Assembly: GCA_964035545.1 (NCBI GenBank)
Contig: OZ037773.1
Location: forward strand, 3,253,751 to 3,317,750
Source: Bugula neritina
Taxonomy: Eukaryota; Animalia; Bryozoa
Reading direction: 5' to 3'
Length of the DNA: 64,000 nucleotides
Positions 4,301 through 63,741 of this stretch are shown in pieces. The notes below the pieces were generated by a model that saw only the letters and a list, made by a program, of their open reading frames with translations, searched no databases and was not told the origin of the DNA. Numbering within the stretch: the first letter of the stretch is position 1; every line of letters starts with the position of its first letter. The position numbers were made by a program, and so were the translations under genes.

Positions 4301-4390
4301 AATTTTGCTCCCCCCCCCCCCCACTGGGATTCGAACCCGAGACCTCTGGCTTGCAAGCAAGTGTGCTAAACATTACACCATAGAGATCAC
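4301..4390 (-). mobile_element. tRNA-derived element family A (SINE-like head)
   Basis: Minus strand reads TGGTGTAATGTTTAGCACACTTGCTTGCAAGCCAGAGGTCTCGGGTTCGAATCCCAGTGGGG: A-box, TGC in the anticodon position, B-box GGTTCGAATCC. No acceptor stem. Related copies at 4550-4634, 12545-12580 and 54025-54089. Confidence 0.7.
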
Positions 4391-42465: not shown

Positions 42466-50793
<8,328 letters not shown>

Positions 50794-53374: not shown

Positions 53375-56300
53375 ATGGGCGTAGATTACTATAAAGGTCA
53401 GAAGTATGAAAAGCTGAAGAAAGAGTTATTAAAATCTGGTCAATTATTTACAGACCCAGAATTTTTACCCAATCAAAAGTCACTATTCTATAGCAGAACA
53501 GAAACAGAAGTTATATGGAAAAGACCAACGGTACGTTCTTATGCATGTTTAAGATACTCTAACAGAGGGATGCTTTATGATTATGTTGTCGTAGAGGAAC
53601 AGTTCACATTTGGTAGGGTTGGAAAACTCCAACGTGTTTAGCCTGCTGTAGGTAAATGTAATTTATGTATGCACTGTAGGAGTTATGCAATGTGCCCAAA
53701 CTAGTAGTGGGCGGAGCCTCGTGTGAAGACCTGATAGAGGGGGAGTACGGAAATCGATGGTTTATAACAGCATGCTCTAATCTAGCCAATCACAAAGCTC
53801 TATTCAATAAGGTGCTGTCAGCTTCGCTTTTAATGTTATGTTGGAAAGTGTTGACTAATAGTATGGAACTGTAAGAGCCTAAACCTGGTGGCAGAACATT
53901 TCAATATCCTTTGACTTTAATGTATTTGAATTTTTAATAGTTTGTAGTTTTAACAAAATTATTCAGTGGTTTTTTTTTTCAAAGTAACATGGTGTAGTTT
54001 GACAAAACAGTTACTTATATAAAATAATTTTGCCCCCACTGGGATTCAAGCCCGAGGTCTCGGCTTGAATCCCAGTGGGGGCAAAATTACACCGCTGGGT
54101 AAGCTCAGCACTGCAATCTAAACTGTCAATAGCAGTAATATTTGAAGTTTTGCTGTGATGTCCAGCTCACCCGTTGCAGTTCTAATTTACATACTCTATG
54201 CAAGTTATTTTAGAGTAAGTAAGAGTTTTGTTGCTATGGTTACTTCAGGTTATTCCCAGCAGCTTAGCGCAAGAATACAATAACACCGGCGCTCACGCTG
54301 GGATATTCAAGTTCCAGTTCTGGTTGTTTGGAACGTGGACAGAGGTGGTGGTGGATGACCTTCTTCCCACTAAGCACGGCAAACTCGTTTACTGTCACTC
54401 TAAGTCTAAGAATGAGTTTTGGAGTGCCCTGCTTGAAAAGGCTTATGCCAAGTTAGTCTAATAAATGCTAGCTTTGAAAAGGATTGTTTTTTTAACTCAA
54501 TATATTTGCTATGGTATATGTTAGTCTAATCTGTTACAGCTCACACCAGTGTCTGTACCTGTGCTGAGGGTCTAAAATGATAACTTTATATTCAAATGTT
54601 TTATTGAATATAAACCAATGTTTGTGGATTATTTGGTGTTGGATTTATATTTAGATTGTCCACTGTTTTATACAAGAAAGAAAATCTGTTCGAATATTAT
54701 CAATATTACTATATTATTACTTTATCTGTTGAATTGTCTTCACTTGATTTTTGTAAAAGTGATTTCTGAAAAATTAGTTGTGTTCAAAACTTGTATTAGT
54801 TGTTTTAGTTTTAACTTATTTTTTTTAGTAAAAATCTTTAATATTGTGTTGCGGTTGACATTGTTTTGTTGTTTGCAGACTATTTGGAGATTATGAGTCA
54901 CTGAAAGAAGGGCTGGCTGTCAACGCACTTGTTGACTTTACGGGAGGGGTGCCAGAAAGATTCGACGTTGCAACAATAGACCAGGAAAATGAGACTACGT
55001 GCAAGTTGGTATTCAGCCAATTAGAAGAAGCTCTGGCCAATAGTGCTTTGATAGTTGCTGAGGTCAAGGTGAGGCTAAGGTCACAATATCTTATTGATGA
55101 TTGGCTGATTTATTTTGGAAAATTTGTCAAACAAAACCCTAATCTATCGGTGTAAAACTTCGGATATAATTTGTTTTATCTGCGTTTCCTTCAACAATAC
55201 TGAAATACGAAAATTGTCTTATAGAAGGTCATTAACAAATATAGCAGTTATTAAGCATGCACATAAATCATATAAATAATAATATCCAATGTTTTCCTTT
55301 AGAATGCTAATGCCTCAGAACTAGCATCGGAAGAAGAAGCTATATCGAGTGGTGCCATTGATGTCCCTGAAGGAACTGATGTATTAGTGTTAAACTCGTC
55401 TCCCCCAGCCACCCAATCAGGTACACTGAGTTATTAACATTTATGTGACAAATGCTCCGTTCATATCTCACGGCTCCATTTCTCGCGAAATTCCATAGGT
55501 CACGAGATGAAATTGGACCTCTGTTTTGTGGCTTATGTATGTGTGTATGGGGACGAAATGGTCGAAATTTGTTTAATTCAGGAGTTAAATCTGGTATTCC
55601 ACTATGTCGTTGATTGAGGTTTCAGGACCCGCAGCTGAGTGAGATACAAAAGGAGCATTGTATTACGTTATCTATTCTTTGTGTAGACTTTGCTTGCAGC
55701 ATGACAAGTTATATAATAAAGCAACAAAGTTTTAAACAGTCAGCTAAGAAACTAGGCTATCCAACTTGTATATCTGTTGCTATGTAGCAGTGTGTGTATT
55801 ATTATTTACTTCAATCAAAACCTGCTAAATATTAGCTATCATTTTACAATTGATTATTTTAGTGGATGTTTGCATATAAAATGCAATCAATTCAATCACT
55901 TTTCATATACAACAATACTTGGCAAACTAAATCAATATGGTCTCACTTCAACTTGTTCATATCCATATATTTTGTGTAGCATGTTCTGTAAATAATGATG
56001 ATTTACTGCTGTATTTACTTTAAAAGATTACTTTAATTTTGTGACTCTAATTACTTGCTCTTTGAAATGTTGGTTTCTAAGTTTACCTGACTGAAAATAT
56101 TGTTAATATGATGATTTAGTAACTTCGCCAGCAAATGTTGGCAGGTAACTCCTTTCCATAATTTCGATTATGTTTTTTAATTTTGAATCGACAGAAAATG
56201 TTCATAGTTATGATTAGTTCAACTTTTCAATAAATATTTTGCAATAAAAAAATTTGTGAATTTTTTCAATATTTAGGAGGTTCAGATGCTATTCGAGCTC

Positions 56301-59300
56301 CAAAAACAGGCTACTTCAGGGACAACTCCATAGTGAGAGACAGCTTTATGACTGATGGTGGTTTACTCGTGGACCATGGCTATAACCTTCGAGAGGTCAA
56401 GAACATTCAAATCAGGAAAGGCGAGTCGTACCGAATGGTGAGACTTCAAACACCGTGGCAGACGGGACAGTGGATGGGTCGCTGGTCGAATGTGTAGGTT
56501 TGCTAGTTTCAGTTTGTTAGTTTCAAGTTGGGAGGAGTTTGCTAATTTTAGTTTAGAACCCGTTTGCTAGTTTCAGTTTAGAACTCGTTTGCTAGTTTCA
56601 GTTTAGAGCTGGTTTGCTAGTTTCAGTTTAGAACTCGTTTGCTAGTTTCAGTTTAGAGCTGGTTTGCTAGTTTCAGTTTAGAACTCGTTTGCTAGTTTCA
56701 GTTTAGAGCTGGTTTGCTAGTTTCAGTTTAGAACTCGTTTGCTAGTTTCAGTTTAGAGCTGGTTTGCTAGTTTCAGTTTAGAACTCGTTTGCTAGTTTCA
56801 GTTTAGAACTCGTTTGTTAGTTTTAGTTTGGGAGGAGTTTGCTAATTTTAGTTTAAAACTGGCTTGCTAGTTTCAGTTTAGAACTCGTTTGCTAGTTTCA
56901 GTTTAGAGCGTATTTCTCTTGCCTAAGGGATAGAATCACATCACGTACATATAAGTATTGAAAATACAATAATTTCATATTGTCAAATTTAAAACTCACC
57001 TAAGCTACATAGCATAAAGCTGTGAGCATTAGAAAAAAGTTTACTTTTAGTAAAGAGCCAGTAATATCTTTTTGCAATGTTCAAAAGTTTTCAGATGTTT
57101 GAAATTGTCGTTGAATTACTTTCAATGGCATAAGAAGATATTTCTTACGTTCAGTTTGTTTTTTGGAGTCCTGTAAGCATAGTTATTATGCAGTAGTGGG
57201 CCAACTACTGTACAGTAATTATGTACAATATATTTTAACGTTGGAAAAATACATTGTGTGCGTATTTTTATGATAATATTTCAGTTTTATTATGTTGACC
57301 ATTTCAAATGATGCATACTCAGCTAGGTACGTCCGTTGTTGTTTACCGCGGCCATTGTTTCTGTTGTACAGGTCACAGGAAATGAAAAGTATGACGGTTC
57401 AAGAAAGAAATAAACTGGGACTGAAGTTTGAGAATGAGTCTGATTTCTGGATGTTGCTCAGTGATTTCTTAGCTAATTTTACACACATGGATGTTTGTCA
57501 CTTTTTCAAGACATCAATGTTTACCTTGAAGAGATCGTGGACTGAGTCAGCTCTTACAGGTACATGAGTAATCAAAAGCAGACGACATCTTTACGACATT
57601 ATTTCACCTCACCCTAGATTATTTAACATATCGCATAAAAAGACACATTGAAATTTTAATTCACATTCCAATTCATGCTGTATTAGCTTTTCAAATCTGA
57701 AAATATTGAAATTATTTAATGAATGTTCAACAGGATTATTGTGTTAGTTTATGCATCTTATTACAAACTCGTCTCGCTCGCCAACAGAATCTTCTGGGTG
57801 TCACTTTAAAACCCCTTAAAGTACTGCTGAAAAGGTTTTGGGGCAGACTTGTGTGTAGCATCAGAAGTTGTCTGCCCTTATAATCAAACAAACTTCTCCC
57901 ATACACAAACTAGAAGCCATGAACTGGAACTATGAAAACTGATTCATTACAGCCAATACATTGAATTCTGAAAACAAATAGTTTGAGATCTCAAAAGTTA
58001 TCTCTCAAAACGTTTAAACTTTCCCTCAATGTTACATAATACTGTCATGGTTATGTTTAGGTGAATGGATAAACTCTCTCCATGATAACAGGTCCGGAGG
58101 AAACCTCAGCCACCCGACATTTTTTAATAATCCTCAGGTATGAGCTTTGCTACGTTTTGTGATCGTATTTGACTATATATTTGAATGAATTTTTATTTCG
58201 CAAGGCTTCATGTTTAAAAACACAGGAAGCTATTATCTATATTAAGATATACTTATGTTAGACTATATTCCAGACTGGGTTCTAGATCATGCAAAGGTGT
58301 AGAAGGCTGTTATTTTTTTTAATTATAGACAAATTATTTTGTTAAGTTTTTTTTACAAAAGATTAAAGAATTGTGGGAATATTTATGCTTGTCCTAAAAT
58401 ATTGTATATTTACTAGCTGCATGCAAGCCTGCATTGCTTAGCAGTGCATCAACATTTTTATAGCCTCAAATTATGATAAAAGTTCAAAACTCTGTTCAGT
58501 GTGGTATAATCAACAGCGAGTTATAGTATATTATAGTACAGTAGTCAAGATAAGGTCAAGCTAAGGTCACACTGTAACTAATAGCATTAAGTACATGATT
58601 TGTTGCAGTACATGTTTGACATGACAGTATCTTCCAACTCTGTGAACTATCCACTAATGGTTAGTCTGGAGCAGAATGACAGAACACTGGTCAGAAGGGG
58701 TGAACGAGGATCCAAAAACAGCTCAATTGGATTCACTATTATGAAGGTAGCTTAAGGGTCCACACTTAGGCAGCTCCATGAAAGATTGAAGTTTTAAAAA
58801 AACTAATGGTTTCTGAACACAGCACAGTCTTTTCTCGGAGACTATGACCCTATTGTTTTTTTAAACCGATTGGCTGTGCAGTGTAGAACATGCTTCTTTT
58901 AATGCCCAATTGTAAATGGGTTTTCAGTAGTGCATATTTTAGTAGGCATTCAAAAATTTACTTAGGTACTGTGAATATGTTATAGGTATGGGTTACTATA
59001 GGTGTGCTTTATATATAGGATGTAGGCTTAAATGAAGTAAAATGATAAAAGTGTGTCATACAATCTAGTAAATTAATTAGATAATAAAGAAAATCAAACC
59101 GAACGATGCTATTTATATACACTTGCGTCTTGCATGCTTTACACATGCCTTATAGTTTTTTCTTGGGAAATCTATTTTTGTATGAATCATACTGTCAATT
59201 TTAATTTTAATGTATATTTCTTTAAACTACTCATTAAAAAGCTTTTAATCTAAGATTATATAAATATAAAAATTTTATTATGTAATGATAGAAATAAAGT

Positions 59301-61690
59301 AGATGTAAATGAAACTTGTTACTAAACTTAATAGGAAACAAAAAAAGAAAGTTTGTATCATCGGCACTTTTTTGTGCAGAAATTATGTTATAGAAAAGCG
59401 GTACAGTGTACAGTTTTGTATTTTTTCAGTCATCTAACGTGTAGTTGTCTTCTCTCAACCATTTAACGTTTTCCAATGTCTAGGTGGAAGAAAACAGAGA
59501 GTATCGACTGCATCGAGTAGCAGACGTCATAACTTCTAGCGACTATTCCACAGACCGCGGTGTCTTTCTCAAGACTCCTTTGAATGCAGGTCGGTATGTC
59601 ATCGTCCCAACGATTGAGAAACCAGGCCCTGCTGGACAGTTCTTCCTTCGAGTTTACAACAGCTGTGGAACTGTGGCTAAGTAAGCTGCAATTATAACAG
59701 TGTGCTGCCATAATGTTGGTTGCATGACGATTAGGCGTCAGCTTAAGTACTGATCAACAATTTATAAGAGATCATTATGTCAAGTGCTCACTTGGTTGAA
59801 GTTGAATTCAACTGTAGCTGCTGCACTTTTACCAAATCGTTAGAGCATACAACCCTCAAACACTCCGCAAATGATAGCCAAGATATATATATATCAATAT
59901 TTTAATAGCGCATAAATTTTAAGTGTGTCAGAGATTCTTGAACTGTAGCTAATGTACCTGTACTCGTCTGATCACCGAACATAAATGTGTACTAAACTTT
60001 ATTCAACATAATAGTATTCTATCACTTTTAGCCATATATAATAATTATGTTATAATCGTGGACTGCATGTAGACTGTTTGTTGCAGTTTCTAGCCTTTCT
60101 CGCTCAGGTAACACTTTATCATTTTAATGAGAAATTTGCTGCATGCTTCTAGCTATGTTCTGTTACAATATGATGCTGATTGTGTCTTTATCTTTGTATT
60201 TTGTGTTATATTTTGGTGCATATAATGCATGTGTGGGCATCTCTGCACCTTCTATCAATTGCTAGTCTATCATTACAAAATTTAAAATTCCCTGATTTTA
60301 CCCAAGATGGAGATATGCTCTGTGGCAGGAGAAAGCTGACAATTATGTGCATATATAGAGTGATTCTGCATGAAACTCAATAACATGTTTTTTGAGTATT
60401 TCAATCTTTGTTACAGAATATATTTCCGCAGTACACTAAATGGTATGTGGGGAAAAAATTTATCTCAATGATTTTAATGATACAATAAAATGACATCAGA
60501 CATGTGACTAGTAGTCTCGGTTATAGTCTAAACTAGATGCATTTTCCTGTTGTGTTCACATTGAATATTCGTACTCAGAGTATTTTTTTATTTACAGGAA
60601 ACATCACCATAGCGACCATTTTGTTTACATTACCTGGTAGGAATTAAGACAATACATTGTGTATGTTATTTTGTGCAGGGAGCTGATGAGAGACGAGCCA
60701 AACTCTTCCAAACCATGCTGTGGTTCTGCAGTATTCCTGGCAGTGCAACTCACAGTCACGCGAGCTGAAGATCTGACCAATGAGAAGCGAGGTAACGTAT
60801 TTCACTGTTCTGCTAACCAATCAGAACCTATTACAAGAGTTTGGGACTTAGTAATAATCAGGCAGTAATCAGTTGAGAGAAGACAATTGCCGAGTTGAAA
60901 CATTTTGTTTCTGTTATAGATTGAGATAAATTAAAATTGTGTAATTTATCCTAAATTACATCATTTTTACTTCTAAATCTCTTCTATTTTATATATATGG
61001 CTTTTTAGATTCTTACATAATACTTAAATATTTTATAAGATGTTTTTATGGTGTTAGGTAAACAAATACTATATCATAAATAATTAATTGCATTACTGGG
61101 TATCTTTAATTATATAGTTGTACTGCATATATGACTAGTAATATTATGTGACACTGTCTAGACGTACTAAACCCATTCTGTGTTGTCAAATGTGAGGGAG
61201 ATACTGTCAAGACTAAAGTAATCAAAGACTCTAGCAGCCCGCAGTGGAATGATAAGTTTATATTCTATAAGAAAGCTAATGGGGAGAGAAAACCAATCAC
61301 CCTCCAGGTATCTTGTTGTTGGTCAATAGAAAAATGCAATACAAACGCAAACTCATTTAAAATTTAATCAGTTTTAATTATGTAGGATTTATACCCACAA
61401 ATATTACAAGAGAATTGATATTTTTGCATTTAGAATTATTTGTAATTGTTAAGTTAGTCTAGCATTTAATAATAGCGTTAGTTGCTTTCTCATTTCAGGT
61501 GTTTAGCTCACAGACCTTGTCAAACACACCTCTGGGTGAAGCAGAAGTTAGTGATTTCTCTGACTCTGGAGGTCAAAATCTGACCCTAACTCTTCTTCAA
61601 AAGAGTAAGAAAAAAGATGTAGCAGACATTGAGTTACCAGGCAGACTGCATGTTCACGTCTGCAGCAGTGAAAATCTCTCGGAGTTCTAA
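53375..61690 (+). CDS. Calpain-5/6/TRA-3-type protein (CysPc, CBSW, C-terminal C2), about 688 aa, predicted catalytically inactive
   Basis: 13 exons: 53375-53530, 53680-53811, 54249-54451, 54879-55068, 55303-55420, 56277-56493, 57372-57559, 58061-58137, 58609-58746, 59484-59680, 60679-60791, 61162-61307, 61499-61690. Motifs [67 protein letters not shown]...PQWN; AATAAA near 61813. Confidence 0.93.
54025..54089. repeat. Perfect 28-bp inverted repeat made from the B-box half of family A
   Basis: taattttgcccccactgggattcaagcc (54025-54052), 9-nt spacer, ggcttgaatcccagtgggggcaaaatta (54062-54089). Confidence 0.92.
55451..55659. mobile_element. Possible MITE
   Basis: Imperfect inverted ends aatgctccgttcatatctcac / gtgagatacaaaaggagcatt; CpG-rich interior. 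Confidence 0.45.
56494..56910. repeat. 24-bp minisatellite with 48-bp higher-order dimers, starting at a splice donor
   Basis: gtttgctagtttcagtttaga followed alternately by actc or gctg; about 17 units. Confidence 0.93.
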
Positions 61691-62685
61691 ACTTCAGATG
61701 CAATTCATGGGTGTCCAAGATTTCCCAGTCTATAAAATTATTTTCGCTTTAAAGTGGGTCATCAAAAATTTATTGTTTTCTATACTTGTTCATTGATTCA
61801 GCTATTGTCTATAATAAAACATAAAATGATGGTATTTTAAGCTAGGACAATAAACTTTTGATGACTTTTTTACTGGATGTAATAATATTCATGTTTATAA
61901 TCACACTTCTTTTATGCTTGTCCAAACAAGAGTTCTGCTCAACTAATAAATATTACAAAATCTCGCATAAAAATAATTGTACTATAAAAATATTTTGTCA
62001 ACTTTTAAATCATTGTTTTCAATTTTGTACTGCGAGAGTAAAATTTTAAGGGGAGATTTTAGCCAAATATATTTCTTTTACTGGTTTATTATATATAACA
62101 ATATGTTTTTATGCTTTGTGTGATATTTTATTTTTTGCTGATATTTATTGGAATATAATGATTTATACTTGATAATTTAAGAATTATGCTATAAACCAGT
62201 CTAATATCGACATGCCACTGGCTCACTGCGTATGCTGCAGCATCGTAATAATTTAATATAATCTGCGTCTAAACTCTAACTCATAGCGACACCTCAAATA
62301 CGTGCATATAGGAAGGATTTGGCTGCACGGGTTGAGCTTTTCTCCGAGTCCACTCGGTGCCATGCTAGGTCTTTTTTTCAAGTAGGCTATAGTAATATTT
62401 TATTTTAAAAATTTTTTAACGTTAGTAGATGTATTTAAACTTGATTAAAATTATAACTCTGATTGAAAAATTCTATGTTTGTTACTTTGATTGAATGTAC
62501 TTTTTGGTGCATCACTTTTGGTTTCTTGTAATTGGGCGGGGAAACGTGTTTCAGCCATTTTAGTTGCTTACAAATTTTGCCGATTATCGATCGGACGATG
62601 AAATTGAATAGAGCTGCACTAACTCCAGCCCTATACCTATATTAATAATTGTATTTCACTCAGATTGGTCAAGTAGCCTAAGAAT

Positions 62686-63741
62686 ATGAGTGATGTAGAT
62701 TATTCCAAACTTAAAGTAACAGAGTTGAGGGAGGAATTGAAGAAAAATGGTCTGGATACAAAAGGGAAGAAAGAGCAGCTAGTTAAACGCCTGGAAAACT
62801 TTTTCGCTAGCGGCGGCGCTGGTAAATATTAGTTAATTTATAGTGTGATTCTATTTGTATGATATTCATTATTCGTATTTTAATAATAATTAATATTCAT
62901 AATAATGGAATTAAAACTCCCGTAGTCGTTCATCTTTTCCTTTGGGTTTTAGATGCTAGTTTAGGAGAAAATGATGCTGACTTGTCACAAAGTCAAAGTG
63001 ATGCTCCAAGTGATTTGGAAACATCAATGGCAGAAGAGAGCCAGCCACCAGCAGAGGCAGTTAAGCCTGCGAGTGAGGTATGCATTCAATATGAATATGG
63101 CAGTATTTGTTTAGAGGAAAACAGTTGATATGAAGCTGTTCTCTTTGCATGTTACTAAACCTTGACTGATGTACAAGTATCCTGTTAACTGTTAAGCCTG
63201 GCCAGCCACTCATTCAATTATGGGAGTTGTGTTGAATCTTCTAATTCAATTTCAACTATTTTCAGACTTTGACTGAGGAGCCAAGCGATACTGCGCCTGC
63301 TGTAGATGAAACACCAGCCGATGTTGGTGAAGCCCCAGCAGAAGTTACTGAAGCCCCAACAGAAGTTACTGAAGCCCCAACAGAAGTTACTGAAGCACCA
63401 GCAGCAGAAGTGACTGAAGCCCCAACAGAAGTGACTGAAGCACCAGCAGCAGTTATTGAAGCACCAGCAGCAGTTACTGAAGCCCCAGCGGAAAATCTTG
63501 AGCAAACATCTGAAGGGGTGAATGGAGTAACTGAGCCTGAGCCCATGGGTGAGTCTGTCTATCAGTATATCCGTGACATATGTTTTGTAGTGCAGGAACT
63601 TCAATCTGTTTTGATAGAGCTACTTTGTATTATCATCTCGTCTTGTTTTAGAGTCTGAAGAAACGGTAAAAGAGGCAGAACCTGCTGTAAAAGAGGAAGA
63701 GAATACTAGTACTGCAGCTGCAGGCGAACAAACCAAATCTG
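62686..63741 (+). CDS. SAP-domain protein, 5' part (hnRNP U-like or SARNP-like; truncated by window end)
   Basis: Exons 62686-62821, 62953-63077, 63266-63548, 63652-63741. MSDVDYSKLKVTELREELKKNGLDTKGKKEQLVKRL is a canonical N-terminal SAP motif, followed by an acidic linker with EVTEAP(T/A) repeats; GC box GGGCGGGG at 62534. Confidence 0.85.

Follow-up and report, generated by a model that had tools for sequence, protein, structure and literature searches.

Can a calpain that has lost its catalytic cysteine be anything other than a broken or misread gene, and if so, from which calpain lineage does it derive? These questions are raised by a calpain-5 (CAPN5)-type gene of the bryozoan Bugula neritina, located within a stretch of 64,000 nucleotides (assembly GCA_964035545.1, contig OZ037773.1, positions 3,253,751 to 3,317,750 of the forward strand), which we call the window and whose first letter is position 1 of all coordinates given below. 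An original prediction, based on this stretch alone, described an intact calpain gene at 53680-56493 with both the catalytic Cys and the catalytic Asn replaced, and proposed a separate invertebrate origin for it. Our analysis indicates that the window gene is probably a catalytically dead calpain of TRA-3/CAPN5 architecture that represents, in this genome, an old paralogue group of lophotrochozoans, referred to here as clade B.

In-frame translation recovers exactly the active-site codons predicted earlier (GAG, CGA, CAT and ACA). The active-site segment of exon 2 reads GAC CTG ATA GAG GGG GAG TAC GGA AAT CGA TGG TTT, with GAG (Glu) at the site of the oxyanion Gln and CGA (Arg, 53755-53757) at the site of the nucleophilic Cys. 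The catalytic His is kept, as CAT at 56375-56377 within GAC CAT GGC TAT (DHGY), and the site of the catalytic Asn is occupied by ACA (Thr, 56450-56452) within AGA CTT CAA ACA CCG TGG CAG (RLQTPWQ). All 16 active CAPN5-type proteins that we aligned have Q, C, H and N at these four sites. Of the Cys-His-Asn triad and oxyanion Gln that characterize an active cysteine protease, the window gene therefore retains the His. Judged from its sequence, the product is without the catalytic residues needed by a cysteine protease and is not able to act as one.

The span of the original prediction covers exons 2-6 only. With exons rebuilt from the raw sequence and frame analysis, the gene extends over 53375-61690 on the + strand and comprises 13 exons, 2067 nt including the stop, or 688 codons. 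As had been claimed, none of the 13 exons is interrupted; the splice sites are canonical (all 12 introns are GT...AG) and the phases consistent throughout. GC content is 0.33-0.52 in the exons versus 0.26-0.38 in the introns. All searches, profile scores and trees reported here for the window gene were made on single exons, which are as follows.

53375..53530, + strand: exon 1, start codon (ATG at 53375) and N-terminal protease core (…EVIWKRPT); donor GTACGT, phase 0; Peptidase_C2 positions 1-32.
53680..53811, + strand: exon 2, active-site helix with GAG (Glu) and CGA (Arg); Peptidase_C2 positions 33-76; codons matched in contigs L044 and L045 (see below).
54249..54451, + strand: exon 3, the part of PC1 with the highest conservation (GIFKFQFW…); 84.9 bits in Pfam, 116.5 bits against the clade-B profile.
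54879..55068, + strand: exon 4, end of PC1 (LFGDYESL…DFTGGV…); 61.4 bits with profile B versus 37.5 with profile A.
55303..55420, + strand: exon 5, predicted acidic, Ser-rich, lineage-specific insert of 39 codons and one base; AG/GT flanks, phase, open frame, GC 0.47.
56277..56493, + strand: exon 6, PC2 strand region with CAT (His) and ACA (Thr); the first ~25 codons prolong the insert.
57372..57559, + strand: exon 7, last part of the protease core plus the linker leading to domain III; 81.2 bits with profile B, 58.8 with profile A.
58061..58137, + strand: exon 8, start of domain III (C2L/CBSW); splice sites, phase, and a match to Dimorphilus protein P0017.
58609..58746, + strand: exon 9, domain III; Pfam Calpain_III.
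59484..59680, + strand: exon 10, domain III; Pfam Calpain_III, E 3.8e-10.
60679..60791, + strand: exon 11, linker, then the first part of the C-terminal C2; splice sites, phase.
61162..61307, + strand: exon 12, C2 domain characteristic of TRA-3/CAPN5-type calpains; Pfam C2, E 2.3e-7.
61499..61690, + strand: exon 13, end of C2 and TAA stop (61688-61690); 21.4 bits (B) versus 2.6 (A).

The assignment to the CAPN5/TRA-3 type, already made in the original prediction, is supported by the Pfam domains and by alignments in which the exons are colinear with CAPN5-like proteins across the whole length. Peptidase_C2 is found in exons 1-4 and 6-7, Calpain_III in exons 9-10 and C2 in exon 12; the stop follows immediately past the C2 region. 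The TRA-3/CAPN5 subfamily is defined by this architecture, in which a C-terminal C2 comes after domain III and a PEF domain is absent. Against PF00648 (cut-off 23.8 bits), hmmscan returned 28.5 bits for exon 2, 84.9 for exon 3, 27.0 for exon 4, 34.3 for exon 6 and 26.7 for exon 7, which together span profile positions 33-297, while exon 1 (positions 1-32) scored 18.1 bits and so falls under the cut-off. Both PC1 and PC2 thus match the CysPc fold of the calpain superfamily (MEROPS C2, PF00648), and a PF00648 scan of the animal's own genome gave identical matches for the window gene, on contig C9.

One part of the model, exon 5, is predicted from frame considerations. Exon 3 ends in phase 2, its split codon being finished by base 54879, and exon 4 ends in phase 0. 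Since exon 6 starts in phase 1 and, as read from the sequence, holds no phase-0 acceptor, a direct splice from exon 4 to exon 6 is ruled out and exon 5 is needed for the frame; in the closest paralogue of the same genome, on contig C7, the corresponding ancestral intron is in phase 0 on both sides. Exon 5 has no homologue and no Pfam match. Together with an extension at the 5' side of exon 6, the predicted exon 5 places the catalytic His 112 residues from DFTGG, versus a near-constant 57 in clade B, and the insert before the His strand amounts to roughly 55 acidic, Ser- and Pro-rich residues without a homologue. A clade-B protein of Elysia crispata (P0177) has about 48 extra residues in the same place (105 versus 57 between DFTGG and His), which may reflect either a genuine insertion in parallel or an error of annotation.

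From which calpains, then, does this gene derive? A full-library search with exon 3 retrieved CAPN5-like proteins with odd active sites from Dimorphilus (E...G), Nucella (S...S) and Elysia (His to Gln). A clade profile built from these three retrieved about 40 lophotrochozoan proteins named 'calpain-5-like', with scores above those of every vertebrate CAPN5/6. In a 63-row maximum-likelihood tree (quick search, with support from the Shimodaira-Hasegawa-like approximate likelihood ratio test, SH-aLRT), the 42 proteins of clade B group together with an SH-aLRT of 100, and the clade of active lophotrochozoan CAPN5 (100) is their sister group (87). The order within clade B corresponds to the species tree, with a brachiopod, annelids, nemerteans, a chiton, bivalves and gastropods, and vertebrate CAPN5/6 form a separate clade (98) inside the deuterostomes (97). 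The residues of clade B at the four sites are the following.

Cys site: Thr 14, Ser 10, Cys 6, Gly 4, Ala 3, Val 2, Pro 1, Arg 1 (n = 41).
Gln site: Gln in 17 of 38.
His site: kept in 20 of 42.
Asn site: kept in 37 of 38.

Cys is therefore absent in 35 of the 41 members, and parsimony on the clade-B tree requires at least seven changes between presence and absence, and at least 21 residue changes, at this site. Conservation is 90% or more among the neighbours that build the cleft (G, N, W, F; G-L, G, G-Y; R-L, P-W). The alignment thus suggests that clade B has a conserved cleft with an active-site chemistry that is no longer under selection. Because five members (Mactra, Liolophura, Owenia, Lineus and Sinanodonta) keep Cys, His and Asn together, the ancestor of the clade was probably active.

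The window gene falls within this clade. Its exons sum to 570 bits with profile B, versus 407 with profile A (active lophotrochozoan CAPN5) and 448 with the profile of A plus deuterostomes; profile B scores higher in 10 of the 12 exons that score. In eight of ten per-exon trees the window exon nests among rows belonging to B only, and the nearest neighbours are all B. It also has the Gly after His that is diagnostic of B (HGY, not HAY), in the sole diagnostic column that a window exon covers, and it shares the B-type motifs GIFKFQFW and LFGDYE. The separate origin in this lineage put forward by the original prediction is thus not sustained, as the gene sits in an old lophotrochozoan clade in which Cys has mostly been lost. 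The independence from eutherian CAPN6 proposed at the same time does stand, given that vertebrate CAPN5/6 form their own clade and that the window exons fit profile B better than the profile that includes deuterostomes. The parallel drawn with the basic residue of CAPN6 is incidental: the clade-B site is mostly Thr or Ser, and besides the window gene Arg occurs in one of 41 members, Lamellibrachia P0215, which has the identical Glu…Arg pair. A CAPN6-like basic residue as a rule of the clade was accordingly rejected.

It could still be argued that an ordinary active CAPN5 copy lost its triad in this animal only, and recently. Within clade B, it is indeed rare or unique to have Arg in place of the Cys and Thr in place of the Asn, the Asn-to-Thr change being near-unique to the window gene, so that these substitutions are lineage-specific, as is the insert of ~55 residues. 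We nevertheless regard this explanation as unlikely, as the exons fit the clade-B profile far better and nest among B, loss of Cys is the rule in that clade, and the active CAPN5 orthologue of this genome is a different gene. A PF00648 scan of the animal's own 216-Mb assembly found six other chromosomal calpain loci, and among them the closest paralogue, on C7 at ~2.149-2.157 Mb (L031/L032), is 52-56% identical to the window gene in exons 1-3. It has QGQLGNCWF, GLVKGHAY and RCRNPWG intact, as well as domain III and a C2 exon, and scores 665 bits with the profile of A plus deuterostomes, 568 with that of active CAPN5 and 526 with that of clade B. By motif and profile evidence the C7 gene is the true active CAPN5 orthologue of the genome, and the active CAPN5-type paralogue that was to be looked for alongside the window gene is present with an intact triad.

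Calpain-domain matches were also found on the small contigs C103, C111, C244, C297, C121, C157, C272, C227 and C286 (L001-L007, L022). They are near-continuous and apparently intron-poor and have a GC content of 0.25-0.36; TAA and TAG codons are frequent in their frames, and TGA is absent. This DNA looks like that of an organism reading TAA and TAG as sense (ciliate-like), an epibiont or contaminant, and not that of the animal.

A second explanation would be that the gene is a decaying or unitary pseudogene, with neutral decay in its early stages showing in the altered active site, the unusual exon 5 and the divergence of exon 6. When exon 2 was used in a word search, a single protein was retrieved, P0295; it had been called on two contigs of Logan, L044 (1618 nt) and L045, from runs SRR4020081 and SRR4020082, which represent genomic DNA of a related taxon. 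L044 is 86.6% identical to window positions 53657-55196 including introns, spanning exons 2-4, and both contigs carry the identical GAG (Glu) and CGA (Arg) codons; the comparison thus bears out the first half of the active site, the His and Thr codons lying outside the overlap. Between the window and the related taxon, exons differ by 3.8-9.5% and introns by 10.7-16.5%. Over 174 codons of exons 2-4, the Nei-Gojobori method counts 20 synonymous differences at 116 sites and 11 nonsynonymous differences at 406 sites, giving a ratio of nonsynonymous to synonymous substitution rates (dN/dS) of 0.14 (Fisher p 2e-7). With its frame intact and a dN/dS in exons 2-4 well below 1 relative to a related taxon, the gene behaves as one maintained by selection. 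A contig from ENA (L043) additionally holds a more distant orthologue of exon 3, and of exon 3 only, with 78% nucleotide and 82-84% amino acid identity.

We conclude that the Arg at the nucleophile position is real and conserved, and that purifying selection acts on the PC1 half at least. Given the identical codons in L044 and L045 and the dN/dS of 0.14, the active site can therefore be attributed neither to assembly error nor to neutral decay. It is true that exon 5 is without a homologue and that exons 4 and 6 are out of frame if it is removed, that exon 6 reaches only 28 bits, and that Asn has been lost although 37 of 38 clade-B members keep it. Set against this are the uninterrupted reading frame of every one of the 13 exons, their canonical splice sites and agreeing phases, the low dN/dS against a relative whose introns are 11-16% different, and the exons past the supposed break (7, 10, 12 and 13), which are open and conserved. 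A pseudogene is thus very improbable, and the neutral evolution that would accompany it is not borne out.

That the product is still an enzyme, with another nucleophile or a different hydrolytic chemistry, is in our view more improbable again. Ser or Thr occupies the Cys site in 24 of 41 clade-B members, about half keep His and Asn, and the five members with the full Cys/His/Asn set may be active. The window gene, however, has Arg at this site rather than Ser or Thr, and its Asn and oxyanion Gln are also lost; other members of the clade have Gly, Ala, Val or Pro there, and calpains with a Cys-to-Ser change are reported as inactive in work cited in PMC11387712. That the protease is otherwise active and its catalytic codons were wrongly sequenced or assembled is barely credible. 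We found no support for this, only the Thr codon standing outside independent comparison. Error at the Cys and Gln codons is rejected by the identical GAG…CGA in two contigs from two other runs of the related taxon; moreover, the gene deviates at four separate positions (Gln, Cys, Asn, and Ala to Gly after His), and loss of these residues is typical of clade B.

Several observations weigh against reading the window gene as a selected, catalytically dead member of clade B. The independent comparison covers exons 2-4, with the Thr codon and exons 5-13 outside it, and a word search with exon 6 gave no match, so that the His and Thr codons are without a counterpart in the relative. The dN/dS likewise comes from exons 2-4 only, the best-conserved part, which make up a quarter of the gene. 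Exon 6, which holds the His and Asn sites, is far more diverged than in other clade-B members (28 bits with profile B, and a long branch in the per-exon tree), so that constraint may be relaxed in part of PC2. The presence of exon 5 is predicted from phase, open frame and GC content only, and exons 4 to 6 are out of frame if it is left out. The sister relation of clades B and A has an SH-aLRT of only 87 from a quick search, and the window gene was placed exon by exon, with no single full-length tree. Exon-3, profile and word searches of the protein collections found no transcript-derived protein of the window gene; the exon-3 representative search and the clade profile search gave no same-species or identical full-length protein, and there was no bryozoan protein among the matches of the protein searches. 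Finally, the mechanism of binding or scaffolding set out below is one proposed by analogy.

If the window gene is a dead member of clade B as we propose, clade B would have split from the active CAPN5 lineage before the divergence of bryozoans, brachiopods, annelids, nemerteans and molluscs. Cys and His would since have been free to change, with the cleft-building residues and the three-domain architecture kept. By analogy with known non-proteolytic calpains, the product would work by binding and not by cutting, its preserved cleft could be a peptide-binding surface, and domain III and C2 could localise the protein to the membrane or the cytoskeleton. It would act alongside the active paralogue on C7 and may share its partners. 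It may have the scaffold or dominant-negative role that the original prediction suggested.

At the level of the clade, we consider it somewhat more plausible than its contrary that Lophotrochozoa have a so far undescribed counterpart of CAPN6, in which clade B became independent of catalysis soon after duplication, lost Cys on at least seven separate occasions, and kept its cleft, domain III and C2 under selection. If true, a TRA-3/CAPN5-type calpain would have been converted to a non-proteolytic protein a second time, in an event much older than that of CAPN6 and shared across phyla, and the five triad-retaining members (Lineus, Liolophura, Owenia, Mactra and Sinanodonta) would permit a direct comparison of active and dead forms. 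Triad-retaining and triad-lost orthologues, together with the active paralogue in the same genomes, constitute a natural series that could probe the non-proteolytic job of the TRA-3/CAPN5-type scaffold and any parallel to the cytoskeletal role of CAPN6. Databases label clade-B proteins merely as 'calpain-5-like', and caution is warranted against annotating them as proteases. A literature search found no paper describing the lophotrochozoan clade B; the pattern at clade level may be unreported, although it is not categorically new.

Some further features lie in and around the gene; no part of the window has the look of human sequence. Intron 2 contains, at 54025-54089, an inverted repeat whose 28-nt arms match perfectly around a loop of 9 nt (TAATTTTGCCCCCACTGGGATTCAAGCC…) and which looks like a small element of the hairpin or miniature inverted-repeat transposable element type; a related copy is located at 4316-4359, and another at 484-527 of L044, where it is conserved in the intron of the related taxon. 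In intron 6, a 25-nt minisatellite at 56537-56907 (14.8 copies, 88% matches, unit GTTTGCTAGTTTCAGTTTAGAACTC) begins 44 nt past the donor of exon 6. The next downstream gene, at 62677-63655, starts about 1 kb past the calpain stop; its first exon is SAP-domain-like (MSDVDYSKLKVTELREELKKNGL…), and a repetitive exon rich in Glu, Ala, Pro and Thr comes next. Upstream of the calpain gene, an open frame at 49844-50143 resembles the last transmembrane helices of a seven-transmembrane receptor.

One of the closest known systems is eutherian CAPN6, which has Lys at the Cys position. Like the window gene, it is a CAPN5 paralogue with a protease core, domain III and C2 that is without the catalytic Cys and is kept by selection, and both have a basic residue at the Cys position, Lys in the one and Arg in the other. 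The two differ in origin, CAPN6 deriving from the vertebrate CAPN5/CAPN6 duplication, outside which the window gene falls, and the window gene from a lophotrochozoan duplication. Unlike CAPN6, the window gene has also lost Asn and Gln and has gained the insert of ~55 residues; the non-eutherian CAPN6 sequences in our set keep Q, C, H and N. CAPN6 binds microtubules non-proteolytically and stabilises them through its domain III, and it binds GEF-H1 (PMC7521557).

The family of CAPN5 and C. elegans TRA-3 has the same order of Peptidase_C2, Calpain_III and C2 as the window gene, again with no PEF, but its active members have an intact triad where the window gene has C to R and N to T changes. Also to be compared are the other clade-B proteins, including Dimorphilus DgyrCDS7909, the 'Calpain-5' of Lamellibrachia, and those of Nucella, Elysia, Lottia, Mytilus and Lingula, which share with the window gene the HGY-type motif, GIF(K/R)F(N/Q)FW, LFGDYE and a degenerate active site. 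From these the window gene, itself a member, is set apart by its Asn-to-Thr change and its DFTGG-to-His spacing. Two Tra-type calpains, AplTra1 and AplTra2, were described in Aplysia by Hastings et al. 2017, who did not address the catalytic residues (PMC5650170). AplTra2 probably belongs to clade B.

Dead calpains as such are well recognised, with CAPN6, CalpC and nematode, schistosome, protozoan and insect examples; those of insects have developmental roles, and repeated independent loss of catalytic residues has been described for them (PMC11387712). One further example would therefore be unsurprising alone, and it is the clade context that makes the present result useful. Drosophila Calpain C and the 'dead' calpains A and B of Rhodnius resemble the window gene in having substituted triad residues and yet being conserved, with biological roles (PMC11387712). 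They are, however, classical-type arthropod calpains of the PEF lineage, not of the TRA-3/CAPN5 type, and are not orthologous to the window gene.

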